Positions 57,099 to 64,000 of a DNA stretch of 64,000 nucleotides are shown piece by piece. The DNA lies in NCBI GenBank assembly GCA_021613535.1, contig CP075496.1, positions 10,726,001 to 10,790,000 on the forward strand. The letters are read 5' to 3'. Every line of letters begins with the position of its first letter. The stretch's first letter is position 1. The notes beneath the pieces were generated by a model, which made no database searches, was not told the DNA's origin, and worked only from the letters and a program-made list of their open reading frames with translations. The stretch comes from Adineta vaga (Eukaryota > Animalia > Rotifera). Position numbers and translations under genes: made by a program.

Positions 57099-59686
57099 AT
57101 GAGTAATACAAATGGTTTTCACCCACCATCATCATCGATGGTATACAATGGACCAAATGGTTTGTTCAATATTTTTTTAATATTTTGAATAATAAATATT
57201 TTCTTTCATTGTAGAAACATCAAAACGGTTGCCAAGTACAAGTAGTACAAGTAGTACCAGTAGTAATAGTACAACTACAACAAATAAGCGTTTAAAAGCA
57301 AAACTTCTTGTGTCAACAGTAACTGAGACACGAACAATGAAAAGACATAAAAACAAGAAATCAAAAGGACCGATTGAAACAACTAAAAAACGTCTTAATC
57401 ATAATGATTCGAATAATAATTCAACGAAAAAAGTTACACAATCAACACACTCTCAACATCTTCTAACACATTCAATTATTCATAATCATCAAAAAAAATC
57501 TTCATCCCAAACAGAAAATCTTTCTTCGACAACAAATAAAACTGATCAACGGCAACATCCTCTTCATCATCATCATCATCATCACCATCATCATCATCAT
57601 AATGTTATTAATAATGATCATTGTGATTCTTGTGGAGAACTATACGGTGAAATGATATCCTGTGATACTTGTCCAGCAACATTTCATCTTCTTTGTGCGA
57701 ATCCTCCATTGTCAAGAGAAGATGTACCAAAAGGTTCATATTTCTGTGAAAATTGTCGAACAAAACCCGCTGAAGATGAATTAACAACCAAAGATAAACA
57801 AATGAAAACATTTGTTCAAACATCCAAACCATTTTCATTGGATCCAAAGACGAAATCACATGTCAATGGTTTCAAAAAAAATCCGCAACGAAATTTAACC
57901 CTAGAACAAATTAAAATACCATCAGGTAATTATTCTTCAAAATTTCAACATCGAAACTTGAATGATTCTTCTTTTAGCATCCAATGGTCGATCATTGGTT
58001 CAACCATCTGGTGAAATTAAATTTCGTGCAACAAATAGTACTATAAAACCTAAATTACCATCATCGAATCTCAAACGAAAACGAAATGATTCATCATTAT
58101 CTCCTCCGTCTACAACAAACATAAATAATATTCATTCTGTAAAAATTCCTACAACACAAATCGAAGCATTACGTCGTCTATTACTCTCATGTCGACCAGA
58201 AGAATTTCGTGGACCAGCATTACCATTTGATGAACCAACGTATAATCGTGATAATTATTTTCAAACAAATACATTATCATGGCAAAGATATTGTTTTATA
58301 TGTCGAAAATCTTCAACAAATCATATTCCATCAATTCATTGTGATTATTGTCCTTTAACATATCATTTAGATTGTTTAAATCCACCAATGACATCATTAC
58401 CATCATCAGCAGATAAATGGATGTGTCCAAATCATATCGAACCAATTCTAGATCGATATTTATTACGAAGAAAGAATTTTTCAACAAGTGAACGTGTTAA
58501 AATCTATCAACAATATTCACAAATTGAACATAAAACAATTATACAAGATTTTACATTGATGAGACAGAGAAAATCTCATTTATTATCGAAAACAATCGAT
58601 AATCATCGATTAGAACGTATTGACATTAGTCAAATACCAAAAGTGATTGAAGAATTTTATTTCAATGCAAATATGAACTCAAAACAGATCTGTTTGGATG
58701 AAATTCACGAAGACATCGAAGAAGATGAAAAAGAAAAATGTGTACAGGTAAAGCTTTATGCATGTTTTTAAATAAGGAATCTTTCATTAATTCTACTGTA
58801 GATTTCCATTCCCACTAATGAATCTTCATCGATATATGATCCATGTGTTTGGGATGTTTTACAAGCGATATTAAATCAAACTATTGATGGTCAGAAATAT
58901 GAATTCTCATCAATAGTTGATTCATCGTTATCGATTGAGAATGATCAACTAAAAAGAAGATTCGAAACGAAACAATCGAATATTCTAGATACCATCGATA
59001 GTCTATTAAATGCATTGAATGAATCAAATTATTCAAATGAACAAATAAAAACAACTAATGATGGATTTGCAGCTCTAATTGCTGCAGCTGATTCATGTTC
59101 TAAAGAAGAAAATTCTTCCATAACAATTAAACAAATTCCGTGTGTATTTTCAGCATCAAACTTTACATTATTCATTTTGTTGTTTTTATTTTCTAGAAAT
59201 TCTCTTTCACTTCTAATTGATCTTTCACAATTTCGTTTATCTCATGCAGCTCTAATTCATACACGTACTAAACATGTGATTTATATTCGTAAACAAGTTA
59301 TCTGGTTTGGAGCATCGAAATCGAATGATATTTGTTTGAAAAATTTCAATAATCAACAAACATGTCAATATGTTACAGAAAAACATGCATGTTTATATTA
59401 TGATCGTCGACGTAATATATTTGAATTATTAAATTATAGTGAATATGGAACAATTGTAAATGGTCTTCGATATGGTTTAGGAAATTTATCTGATGATGAA
59501 AGTGATTATGATGACGATGTTGAAAATGATGAGACGAAAAATGAGAATGAAAATTTACAAAAATGTTTTTGTTTAACAACACCAATGTATCATTCAGCAT
59601 GGGATGGACCTGCCCAACTAGAACAAGGAACAGTAGTTCAAATTGGTTGTCATGAATTTCTCTTTTACCGGCATGTTGTCCGATAG
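57099..59686 (+). CDS. PHF12: PHD finger protein 12 (Pf1; Sin3/HDAC complex): two PHD fingers plus a C-terminal FHA-like domain, 5 coding exons
   Basis: PHD1 NNDHCDSCGE..ISCDTCPATFHLLCANPPL..FCENC; PHD2 CFICRKS..IHCDYCPLTYHLDCLNPPMT...KWMCPNHIE; C-terminal CQYVTEKHACLYYD..FELLNYSEYGTIVNG..WDGPAQLEQGTVVQIGCHEFLF. A His12 tract lies at 57565-57600. Confidence 0.9.
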
Positions 59687-62156
59687 TACAAACAATAAAA
59701 ATCAAACAGAATTACATTCTTTTTTCTGTTTGTTTGTTTTCTCTATGTCGTTACTTTTTTGTACATAGTTTACTTGTGAGTTGGCATGTCATTGATAAAG
59801 AACGAAATCATCTCGATGATGAAGTTAAGAATTAACAGCATAGGTGCGCGCTAAGATTCTTTCTCTCTTCTTATTTTTTTTTCGGTTTTCCTCTGTTTTG
59901 TTTCTCTAACGCATTTCATTATATATATATATATATACATAAATATATAGCTTAGTGCCCGTGATCGACATTTGTTCTCATTGTCTATTTTTTTGTGTGT
60001 ATGTTCTACTTTGTTTTTTCTTTCTCTTTATTATGTGTAAAAGTAAAGAACTATGCGCGACTCATCCTACAAATATAATAAGCTTTTCTCTTTTCAATAC
60101 GAGAAAATCAATCATTTCATTATGGTAACAAATAATTCTGTGCAATGTTTCGTACTGATGTCAAAATAGGAAAACATGACAATCTAAAAACTTGTATAGG
60201 CTAATAAATTAAATTACTATAAAAAAGAATATGCAATATGCAATAGAATGAATCTAGATGTTTGAGTGAAGATGTACAACTAAAATAAAAAAGATACATG
60301 GACACTGTTGATTTATTTGATCTATACAATTTGTTAAGGTCGAATCACTGAAAAGAAAATGTCTACTATCGTCATTTACAGTATTCATTAACTCGATACG
60401 CCTTTGGCATAAGTCGTCCTCATCATGTTCAATGATAGGACTGACATAGAAAAAGAAGCGTATCAGATACAATTGAACGACGATAAGATATAACCTTCGA
60501 CTTCTCGTGTAGGATGATCATGTTCAAGGTAGTCATTGGTGAGATTAGTCAAGGTTATCTTTCAAACATCGATGTCGCATTAGTCGACTTCAGTCTTTTA
60601 TGATTGTTCAATGATCCTTAATACGACTAGAGACATTCTACTGATGTTGTTTTTGTCTGATCAATCTTGAATAATCTACGAACACTATTGATTTGCGATC
60701 GATGTGGCACCGTTCATTTATTTATTATCATAATGCACAATTGTTCAATAAAGAGAATAATAGGAGACCAATGTTAAATTTCTTTTTTTTCTTCCTTCTA
60801 TAAAATGACCATACGGCACCTTTTCCTCTTCTCGCCTCAGCATGATATTTTTTTCCATAAAGTGACAAGATACGTAATAAGAGTCGATCCACGTGTTGTT
60901 ATTATTGAAAAGGCGTAGCCAAGTAGGTTAATATACATTCTATTGTTACAATAAATATATGATTTTTGTTTCCAATGTAACGAAAGTTGATAGTCATTGA
61001 TTAAAATTTTTAACAAGCGTGAAGTGAAATCTCTTGCAGTTCCAGTATAAAAAAGTCGTACCTGCTGTGAACTTACCTAAATGATCTGTCTACACGAGCA
61101 TGAATATTGAGGTGTCTCTATTTCCGCACATCATTCTCTCTTTCTCTCCCTCTCTTAAACAATAGACAAAAAAGTTAGTAGTTTTTGTTACTATATAACT
61201 TTTCCTTATATTGTATGTCTGATTGAATGCAGGTGTAGCATGCTATGATTACTGTTTCCTATATCCGAATGTTCATTCATTGTACAATGATGAGTAGGAG
61301 GGCAGAAGGTATCGCGTGTGGAAAGAAAGGAGGAAAAAATGGCTAGACAGACTACTCAAGTGTGAGAACAATGGTGATCACGCTTGTTTCTGCAAGAGAA
61401 TATGTTGTTCACAATCTAATTGTTTCTATCCGTATATAAACTGCGGAAATGAAGACGAAGAAGAAATCATCTGAAAGAAAGATTTCGATTATTGATTTTC
61501 TATCTTAATATATTTCATTAAATTGTTTGTATTGTCAAAGCTGACAATATTCATTCAAGTAGTCGCAGTTTTAAGACGTTCGTTCTTTTTTTGATGATAG
61601 ATATGGATTCGTTTTATCATCATTCTTTGTTCTCTTCTAGAGATGTCAAGTGGCTCTTTGTCAACCGAAAAAATTCTTTTTTTCTTTGTGACATCTGATT
61701 AATACACTTCTTTTCATCGTTTTCTTTTAATCTCATTTCACCTCTCTTGAATTTACACGATTAATTACACAATAACAAATCAATAATGACGAAAGTGTCG
61801 TTTTGATATTGTTAAACAAATAAAAAAAATCTTTATAGCAATAAGCAGTCTTTTACACAAAGAAATCGAGAAAGTTGATTTCATTTCTCTAGATGATGTA
61901 ACGGTTATGCACGTAATTGTTTTGAAAAAAAAAGGGAAACTTATCAGATTCTAATTAAAACAATCTTTCTTTTCTCTCTGTTCTCCAATCAAGCGAACTT
62001 TCCAATTTTTTTCTTTCTTTCCTGTCAACTGATTTTCTCTTCATCGTTCTCCTCTCTCTTTCTGTTTCTCTTTCTCTTATACTTTCCTTCTCATTCTATC
62101 ACACTCATTCATTTTCCATTTTCGTTTCAATCAATACATCGTCATATTCTAAGACA

Positions 62157-62637
62157 ATGACAACAAAAACAGCAACTACCTTATCACCTATAAAACGATG
62201 TCATGGATCACCTAATCTTAAAAAACGGCGTCTATCATCAATCTCAATACATCGTAAGCAACAAATGAATTTATCATTATCAATTCCAACAATGCTATCA
62301 GTACCTAAAACGATCACAGTTACTTACGAAAAACAAATCCTATCATCAACTCAATTGCCTGATCTTATTCATGATATATTCATTGAACAACAACGTCGAG
62401 AAACGATTGTTAATATTGCAACAATATTACGAAAAGTTGGTGATCAAATGGATGAACGATTGCAAGTAATAATCCTTGAAAATTCTATAAGAAAGAGCTT
62501 TTTTTTTATTATAAATATTTATCTTTTAGATAAACAGCAGTTCATCATCATCGTCATCGTTAATAGATCACGTATTCGGTCAACGATCCATCACATTAAC
62601 TCATTGTTTATCTTGTATTCTTCATCTTTTCTTGTAA
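62157..62637 (+). CDS. Candidate BH3-only (Bcl-2 family) protein, 138 aa, two exons (62157-62465, 62530-62637)
   Basis: ETIVNIATILRKVGDQMDERLQ fits the BH3 consensus. A phase-0 intron of 64 nt (CAA|gtaata...ttttag|ATA) gives a Ser-rich linker and a hydrophobic C-terminus (ITLTHCLSCILHLFL*). Confidence 0.65.
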
Positions 62638-64000
62638 TATTTATACATAATTTGTTTTATTCTGTTCACCGGTTCATGGTGCTATACTATGTAGCCCTTC
62701 CATGTACATAAAACATTTTCTTATTGTTCAACTACTATTTATTTTTTACAATACAATATTTAAATGCATTAATAATCTATTTCTCATTCATTTGAGTGTT
62801 TTTTATTTGTTCAATGAAGAACAACATTTTGTTTTCATTGATTAAGTCAAGATCTGATTAAATAAAGGAAATATGATTTATCACCTTGAAAAATTTTAAT
62901 TCGATCAACGATTGTAATGTGATTGACTTATCACTTTTTTTTTCCTTCACGATTGACACGCGAACATATTTATTTTTAGTCGAATGTGTCAAGTATCCAC
63001 TGATTAGGTCATCGGAAATGGTCAAGTAGTGATCATCAACACCTTTTCATTTGTCTTTCTCGTATTCTTTAAAGTACTTATTTGTCTACTAAAGTTAGAC
63101 AATCATTCATGAAAATGTTTTTTTTGTATTTTGAAAAGTGAGACTCTTCAATTGTTGTCGATGGATGAGACGCTCTTCTACCATCAAAATCATTCCCGCC
63201 ATTCTGTTTGATCAACAATCGATAAGTGTCTTGTATTCAATGTCAGATCAATTTCATTGCAGTCGATTGTTCATACACTTCATTTATTTTCTATGGTAGC
63301 GGTAATGGTTGCTTTCCTTCTTATTTTCATGGCATTTTTTAAGTCTTTGTTGATATTCTAGTATTGTTTTGATCTTTTCTTTTTCATCTTTGTCAATGAA
63401 GGGAAATTAAAAGTGGCACGTGCGTTTCAGATTTCAATCCATTTGTAGATATGTACGACAAAACTAATGTCTAGTCAATGGATAATGACATATTTCGATT
63501 TGTATACATGAAATTACCAATTATATCATTGTTGTCGTCTGTTGTTATTGGATATTATCCTGTATTTGATAAGTAATTCATTCTTAAAAAAATTGATCTT
63601 TTTCCTTCTATAAGACTCATATATATATATATATATATATGTATAATTAATAAAGTGTTATTCGATTTGTGATAGATGCCTTGCGGCATTCAACGATGCA
63701 GGTGATGTATTTGTCTTTTCGTTAAGTCATTAGAAAAACAAGCTTGTATGATAATGAAGGGATTGATATATGTTATCGCGTGTTTGACGAACAATACTTG
63801 TATATGTATCACGTTGATCGACTGATTACCTCATAGATATGAGTGGTCAATTAAAAATTAGCTTTCGTTGACAGTATGAGGTGTTAACTATCCTGCTGTG
63901 ATGGACAGTGAAATGGAGAATTCTTCTCTCTGCATGTGATAGTTATGCACCTGTATGCTCATGGTAAACTGAACTATTATTCATTTCTTTTTACTTGTTG

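Follow-up and report, generated by a model that had tools for sequence, protein, structure and literature searches.

In the bdelloid rotifer Adineta vaga, a two-exon gene encodes a 138-residue protein whose conserved amphipathic helix finds its best structural-database match in the BH3 of mouse BID. We consider it reasonably probable that this protein is a bdelloid-specific BH3-only-type ligand of Bcl-2 proteins, which would tip their balance toward cell death. BH3-only proteins, a polyphyletic functional class, act as sensors from which mitochondrial cell death is set off. To our knowledge, few of them have been recognized outside vertebrates (in hydra, C. elegans and schistosomes), because such proteins are short, disordered and fast-evolving. 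In a 2022 survey, A. vaga is entered with three Bcl-2 proteins and no BH3-only protein is named for rotifers (PMC8998228), and a 2024 study of lophotrochozoan apoptosis covers neither rotifers nor BH3-only proteins (PMC11463336). Full-text literature searches combining bdelloid or rotifer with BH3 found nothing relevant.

The window, by which we mean the whole 64,000-nucleotide stretch analyzed here, corresponds to G000:C4:10726001-10790000 in a genome of 100.8 Mb, six contigs and ~30% GC. A first-pass annotation of the window, made from the letters alone, had proposed a spliced two-exon gene, and the translations agree with it: those of exon 1 and exon 2 together are identical to the database protein P0001 (A. 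vaga hypothetical protein I4U23_020601, 138 aa), the record on which all full-length protein analyses are based. The unspliced reading frame runs through the intron to 184 residues and hides the true C-terminus, as had also been suspected. In RNA contigs assembled from four public runs over the region 61300-63300, which carry neither strand nor expression level, the predicted intron is skipped exactly, with the joint 62465>62530 present in contigs of X6 (510 nt), X7 (356 nt) and X8 (401 nt) from three studies. A search of the assembly found no intronless DNA copy of the gene; the joined exon form is therefore RNA-derived. Together, the contigs span at least 62124-62839, and no contig in any of the four runs falls within 61300-62123. 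The features of the locus are collected in Table 1.

Table 1. Positions of the gene, its protein modules and a neighboring conserved block, numbered from the first letter of the window.
Feature	Position	Strand	Description
Upstream conserved block	61893..61928	+	ATGATGTAACSGTTAT .. gap .. TAATTGTTTTGAAAA; near-identical in the DNA alignment of the C4 and C1 homoeologues, flanks diverged
5' UTR, minimal	62124..62156	+	spliced X6 contig starts at 62124
Exon 1	62157..62465	+	ATG at 62157; 103 codons, last residues ..MDERLQ; residues 1-103 of P0001
N-terminal module, residues 1-25	62157..62231	+	two Ser-Pro sites; KKRR cluster followed by Ser/Thr; conserved
LPDLIHD, residues 67-73	62355..62375	+	invariant Pro-Asp; start of the long helix; motif common to the second family (hhalign)
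BH3-like core IATILRKVGDQMD, residues 87-99	62415..62453	+	hydrophobic I87, L91, V94, M98; small G95; acidic D96
Intron	62466..62529	+	64 nt, GT..AG, phase 0
Exon 2	62530..62637	+	35 codons plus stop (62635-62637); helix end, poly-Ser linker, C-terminal helix
C-terminal moderately hydrophobic helix, residues 113-137	62557-62631	+	AF2, pLDDT under 60
3' UTR, minimal extent	62638..62839	+	X1 contig 62570-62839; X6 contig to 62697

AF2, run with the family alignment, leaves residues 1-67 without regular structure (pLDDT under 50 at 26-47 and 54-65) and places a long helix at residues 68-106 with a pLDDT of 77-85, followed by the poly-Ser linker and a low-confidence helix at 113-137. The two helices do not assemble into a helical bundle, so the model shows no Bcl-2 fold. 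Likewise, PF00452 (Bcl-2, BH1/BH2) finds no match in the protein at E-values up to 10, in line with the earlier statement that BH1 and BH2 are missing.

Homologues of the protein appear to be confined to bdelloid-type sequences, as had been anticipated. A word-index search with exon 1 retrieved 69 of them, from Adineta ricciae, A. steineri, several Rotaria species and metagenome contigs, and none of the 69 contains a Pfam domain. An exhaustive profile search of 1.84 billion representatives at E-values up to 1e-3 returned 21 matches, all belonging to the same family, and neither search found relatives beyond rotifer-type sequences. The most divergent member, P0116, is located in NCBI assemblies GCA_905250885.1 and GCA_905249995.1. 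Four further matches within the A. vaga genome, L003 and L004 (E 0.2 and 2) and L013 and L014 (E 4 and 8), were dismissed as noise.

Across 59 aligned homologues, the invariant positions are M1, T5, S10, R24, R25, P68, D69, L91, R92, G95 and D96, while T2-K4, L9, P11-R14, S18, L21, I84, I87, A88, K93, V94, Q97 and D99 are conserved in at least 90% of the sequences. Position 98 is occupied by M, I, V or L and is thus hydrophobic throughout. The helix carries four spaced hydrophobic residues, a small residue and an aspartate on one amphipathic surface with a hydrophobic moment of 0.46, which is the arrangement of a BH3 motif. Judged from the alignments, the conserved core exceeds a chance motif, being invariant or nearly so in 59-69 homologues, and the four central positions L91, R92, G95 and D96 bear out the expectation that the motif would be retained in orthologs. 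The BH3-like helix is also the most constrained part of the protein and the tail the least: comparison with the homoeologue on C1 yields dN/dS values of 0.09 (dS 1.17) for the helix, 0.44 for the N-terminal part and 0.60 for exon 2. The first-pass annotation had asked whether only the helix and the tail are conserved. The answer is negative on both sides, in that S10-P11, R24-R25 and P68-D69 are also invariant or nearly so and the tail evolves at the rate just given. We infer that the N-terminal module is a regulatory region, possibly subject to phosphorylation, and that the LPD motif acts as a helix cap. Neither module is explained by a pure BH3 role, and their conservation counts against such a role.

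That the locus is non-functional, a spurious reading frame or transcriptional noise, is scarcely credible. The small size of the protein and its lack of a Pfam domain are all that could be cited in favor of this explanation, which is refuted by splicing in three studies, conservation across genera, the low dN/dS of the helix and paralogues that keep the intron position.

With a motif as short as BH3, false positives are a familiar problem, and this speaks against the BH3-only reading. We compared a profile of 44 positions, built from 53 helix segments, with the whole PDB. Its best match is the BH3 of mouse BID (2voi_B) at an E-value of just 6.6e-4, a modest figure that counts against the BH3-only reading, and BH3 peptides make up about 16 of its 18 best matches. 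Mouse BID is followed by designed Bfl-1/Mcl-1 binders, full-length BID, the PXT1 BH3, human BID peptides and BNIP5, with BIM and Noxa lower in the ranking. As a single sequence, exon 1 matched only a viral fusion glycoprotein in the PDB (E 0.83) and no BH3 peptide. The ranking is not automatic for any amphipathic helix, because a comparable helix profile from the second family described below did not bring up BH3 peptides in the same way. Additional indications come from Pfam and from protein language-model clusters. Sub-threshold matches to the BID family (PF06393) occur in 12 of 20 members and fall on BID profile positions 78-104, the BH3 part of the model; the whole of P0001 scores 12.9 bits (E 0.082) relative to a cut-off of 25, and the best E-value among the 20 members is 0.0037. 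The nearest named language-model clusters, which serve as leads only, have similarities of 0.80-0.87 and include PXT1 (0.87, the top neighbor), BMF, BIM, BIK and a PUMA-containing cluster.

The protein also attracts weak matches of other kinds, and these suggest a different explanation, in which it is a small bdelloid-specific helical protein whose likeness to BH3 is coincidental and whose conserved helix would serve another partner, perhaps as an SHD-like adaptor helix, a coiled coil or a membrane-regulatory peptide. GIT_SHD (PF08518) falls just short of its threshold of 21.1 bits with exon 1 (21.0 bits) and with the full-length protein (20.3 bits), covers residues 62-83 and is below threshold in 8 of 20 members. 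The SHD repeat usually occurs in pairs within large scaffold proteins, and assignment to this family was rejected on these scores, on the single copy of the match and on the 138-residue length of the protein. Amphi-Trp, which gives weak matches in 13 of 20 members, was likewise rejected as a family, along with further weak Pfam matches. A rough estimate of ~100 minimal BH3-like matches per six-frame translation of a 100-Mb AT-rich genome also favors coincidence, as does the failure of the second family's profile to yield a BH3-peptide ranking. The SHD match, however, covers the start of the helix and lies outside the invariant L-R-x-x-G-D core, whereas the invariant residues coincide exactly with BH3 contact positions. 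Four independent lines, namely the PDB profile, the position of the Pfam BID match, the language-model neighbors and the complex model with its controls described below, point to BH3 instead, and we judge a coincidental likeness to be unlikely.

Comparison with known BH3-only proteins places the resemblance at the level of the motif. The helix had been described as BID-like, and this description stands for the BH3 motif, through the PDB profile and the position of the Pfam match, and does not extend to the fold, as modeled by AF2. The family consensus RRETIVNIATILRKVGDQMDEQLQ aligns with the mouse BID BH3 (2voi_B), and the A. vaga core is closest to that of BID. In contrast, BID is a globular, helical protein of ~195 residues that is activated by cleavage, while the A. 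vaga protein has 138 residues, a single long helix and no BID fold. Nothing aligns between the two outside the BH3; the likeness is one of motif. Membership in the BID family was accordingly rejected, given a sub-threshold PF06393 match restricted to the BH3 and an AF2 model without a globular fold. BIM, BMF and BIK share with the A. vaga protein a disordered N-terminus, one BH3 helix and a hydrophobic or amphipathic C-terminal segment, but show no detectable homology beyond the motif, and the A. vaga tail is less hydrophobic than a classical anchor. No dynein-light-chain-type motif was seen in the A. vaga protein. PXT1, the top language-model neighbor, matches the profile in the PDB at E 0.008, with EIIHKLAMQLRHIGDNIDHRM aligned to the core; it belongs to chordates and bears a signal for peroxisomal targeting, and its likeness is again at the motif level. 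The C. elegans proteins EGL-1 and CED-13 and the schistosome BH3-only proteins are comparable in being small, lineage-restricted protostome ligands, although the profile search of 1.84 billion proteins found no sequence relation to them. Protostome BH3-only proteins are reported not to be findable by sequence searches across phyla (PMC8998228).

The C-terminal segment differs from expectation. A hydrophobic tail had been noted, together with the remark that BH3-only proteins are often tail-anchored, yet the Kyte-Doolittle mean of the tail is only about 1.0 over 18 residues, as against 2.24 for the best 18-residue window of P0070, a Bcl-2 protein of the same genome (2.03 for its last 18 residues), and 1.87 for the best window of the second family. 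Most members of the first family average 0.5-1.1 over the last 18 residues, and the divergent P0113 and P0116 reach 1.3-1.5. A tail anchor consists of one transmembrane segment at the C-terminus, with about 18-22 strongly hydrophobic residues. Because the segment is too weakly hydrophobic for a classical anchor, the tail-anchored class was rejected. The weakly hydrophobic helix may nevertheless support peripheral membrane binding.

A. vaga carries related genes at other loci. The homoeologue on C1 (L002:1432-1801; G000:C1:3488072-3488441) consists of exon 1 at 1432-1647, a 55-nt intron and exon 2 at 1703-1801, and encodes 104 residues. It has lost ~30 N-terminal residues and has kept TIVNIATLLRKVGDQMDEQLQ, the intron position and the tail, and its helix is nearly identical to that of the C4 gene despite a dS of ~1.2. 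A search of the genome with the helix profile revealed a third locus, L012 (C4:4571616-4571756, E 0.005), ~6.15 Mb before the window. The gene at this locus (1354-1855), with exon 1 at 1354-1653, a 58-nt intron and exon 2 from 1712, corresponds to P0118 (I4U23_018519, 148 aa), which contains LPDIVND, the core IAQSLRLVADQVD, a phase-0 intron at the matching place and a more hydrophobic tail. P0118 represents a second family, which has 49 homologues among bdelloid-type sequences and a core that is nearly invariant; the homoeologue of P0118 is P0147 (I4U23_002578). The C1 homoeologue and this second paralogous family with its own homoeologue bring the number of such genes in A. vaga to four.

Comparison of the two families by hhalign gives a probability of 93.8% (E 1.7e-7). 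The second family resembles the first in its LPD[IL]VND helix start, its IAxSLRxVADQVD core, the place of its phase-0 intron and a hydrophobic C-terminal tail; the intron position is common to the gene in the window, its C1 homoeologue and the second family, and lies one codon later in the P0116 gene. The second family differs in having alanine in place of glycine before the aspartate, a more hydrophobic tail and another N-terminus. Alanine for glycine in the BH3 core also occurs in Bmf. Full-length and helix profiles of the second family matched GDNF and designed coiled coils in the PDB, together with one designed BH3-type peptide at E 0.27. Since these profiles gave no BH3 ranking, the BH3 status of the second family rests mainly on its relation to the first.

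Comparison of the homoeologous copies also draws attention to the flanks of the gene. Conservation between the C4 and C1 copies marks the block at 61893-61928, which precedes the ATG by ~230 nt, as a candidate promoter element. It contains a TAACGG core, which resembles a Myb-type site, and the central base pair of this core is flipped between the two copies. Downstream, a block at 62881-62990, ~245-350 nt past the stop, is shared with the homoeologue (TCACCTTG .. TTTTAATTCGATCA .. ATTGACTTATCACT .. ATTGACA). It starts past the last RNA contig end at 62839 and may belong to a longer 3' UTR or to the promoter of the gene that follows. On the same strand, ~2.4 kb upstream of the gene, the ORF 59015-59686 (+) matches the FHA domain (PF00498, E 1.7e-4, 22.4 bits at a cut-off of 20.7) and is probably one exon of a larger gene.

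Potential partners are available in the A. vaga genome, where C2 and C5 together carry at least five Bcl-2-family loci. One of them, L009, encodes P0070 (I4U23_025922, 183 aa), which has a strong C-terminal anchor and, among PDB entries, comes closest to A1, Mcl-1 and Bcl-2. The BH1 of P0070 reads W-G-K in place of the usual W-G-R, a feature that is invariant in 31 orthologues. L009 was found in one copy, with no homoeologue among the five Bcl-2 matches. L007 and L008 are nearest to BAX. L006 (L006:1108-1689; G000:C2:9733826-9734407) and its homoeologue L005 have the best Pfam Bcl-2 score in the genome. L006 carries a BH3 exon, IAYRLRLIGDQLD, with a core in the style of that described here, followed by an exon with BH1 (YNWGRIV), and is probably a Bak/Bok-type effector. 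Compared with the PDB, its BH3-bearing exon matched only a designed MCL-1 binder (E 0.95) and gave no Bak/Bok typing.

Modeling of the helix with an A. vaga Bcl-2 homologue, which the first-pass annotation had suggested as a check, predicts binding in the canonical groove. With the chains folded without alignments, residues 1-160 of P0070 and 62-106 of P0001 score 0.88 (0.89, 0.88 and 0.87 in individual runs), and the best of three controls scores 0.01; in the calibration, which included neither peptides nor disordered chains, 51 of 78 solved complexes attain this mark, as do 2 of 108 mismatched pairs. At least 91% of contacts recur between runs, with a partner pLDDT of at least 77. The modeled interface involves receptor helices 2-5 and 8, including BH1, and the helix takes a register and orientation that are canonical for Bcl-xL/BH3 structures. 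In the model, the contacts of lowest error connect I84, I87, A88, L91, V94, G95, M98 and D99 with receptor residues 83-91 and 98-108, helix 2-3, and residues 148 and 151. The contacted receptor parts include helix 4 and the BH1 stretch W99-G100-K101, T104 and F108, which are invariant in 31 orthologues. The model supports groove binding by the helix, with the proviso that its score may reflect memory of solved BH3-groove complexes.

From these features, we propose the following mode of action. The disordered, basic, Ser/Thr/Pro-rich N-terminus probably bears regulatory sites, and the weakly hydrophobic C-terminal helix, following the poly-Ser linker, may keep the protein at membranes. The amphipathic helix at 68-106 would insert its core (I87, L91, V94, G95, D96 and M98) into the groove of the same animal's multi-domain Bcl-2 proteins. 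The groove of the pro-survival-like I4U23_025922 would thereby be occupied, and the Bax-like and Bak-like homologues would possibly be engaged as well. An occupied groove would then shift the Bcl-2 balance toward mitochondrial permeabilization and cell death.

The last of these steps is where a ligand of the same groove with a non-apoptotic function offers an alternative. Such a ligand might act in autophagy or mitophagy, calcium handling or mitochondrial dynamics, comparable to Beclin-1 and BNIP3-type BH3-like proteins, and would draw on the identical binding model. The strongly conserved extra modules suggest a protein in everyday, regulated service more than a trigger that seldom fires. A 2024 transcriptome paper further reports that p53 is absent from the A. 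vaga genome, argues that apoptosis after irradiation or desiccation is unlikely and describes bdelloids as eutelic (PMC10809525). The reported absence of p53 and the argued lack of post-irradiation apoptosis count against a pro-death reading. The motif, however, is nearest to the classical killers BID, BIM, BMF and PXT1 and not to Beclin or BNIP3, and the retention of Bax-like and Bak-like loci argues that the death machinery is still in use. We accordingly regard a non-apoptotic role as rather improbable and favor the pro-death BH3-only ligand.

A broader proposal is more speculative, and we hold it with more doubt than conviction. It states that bdelloids keep a private set of four BH3-only genes (two families, each with two homoeologues) that are subject to strong purifying selection and arose independently of those of vertebrates, nematodes and flatworms. 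This set would be gated by N-terminal Ser-Pro and Arg-Arg-x-Ser/Thr sites in place of a p53-type switch, and the death pathway would be retained yet silent in damaged somatic cells. Bdelloids withstand desiccation as well as DNA double-strand breaks in the hundreds (PMC10809525). With an expressed BH3 candidate and a modeled partner from the same genome, the bdelloid intrinsic death pathway and its restraint become testable, and the candidate adds a data point on whether BH3-only ligands have originated convergently more than once. If the proposal is true, the four-gene ligand set would be the control point for the silent mitochondrial death pathway of an extremely radiation-tolerant animal.
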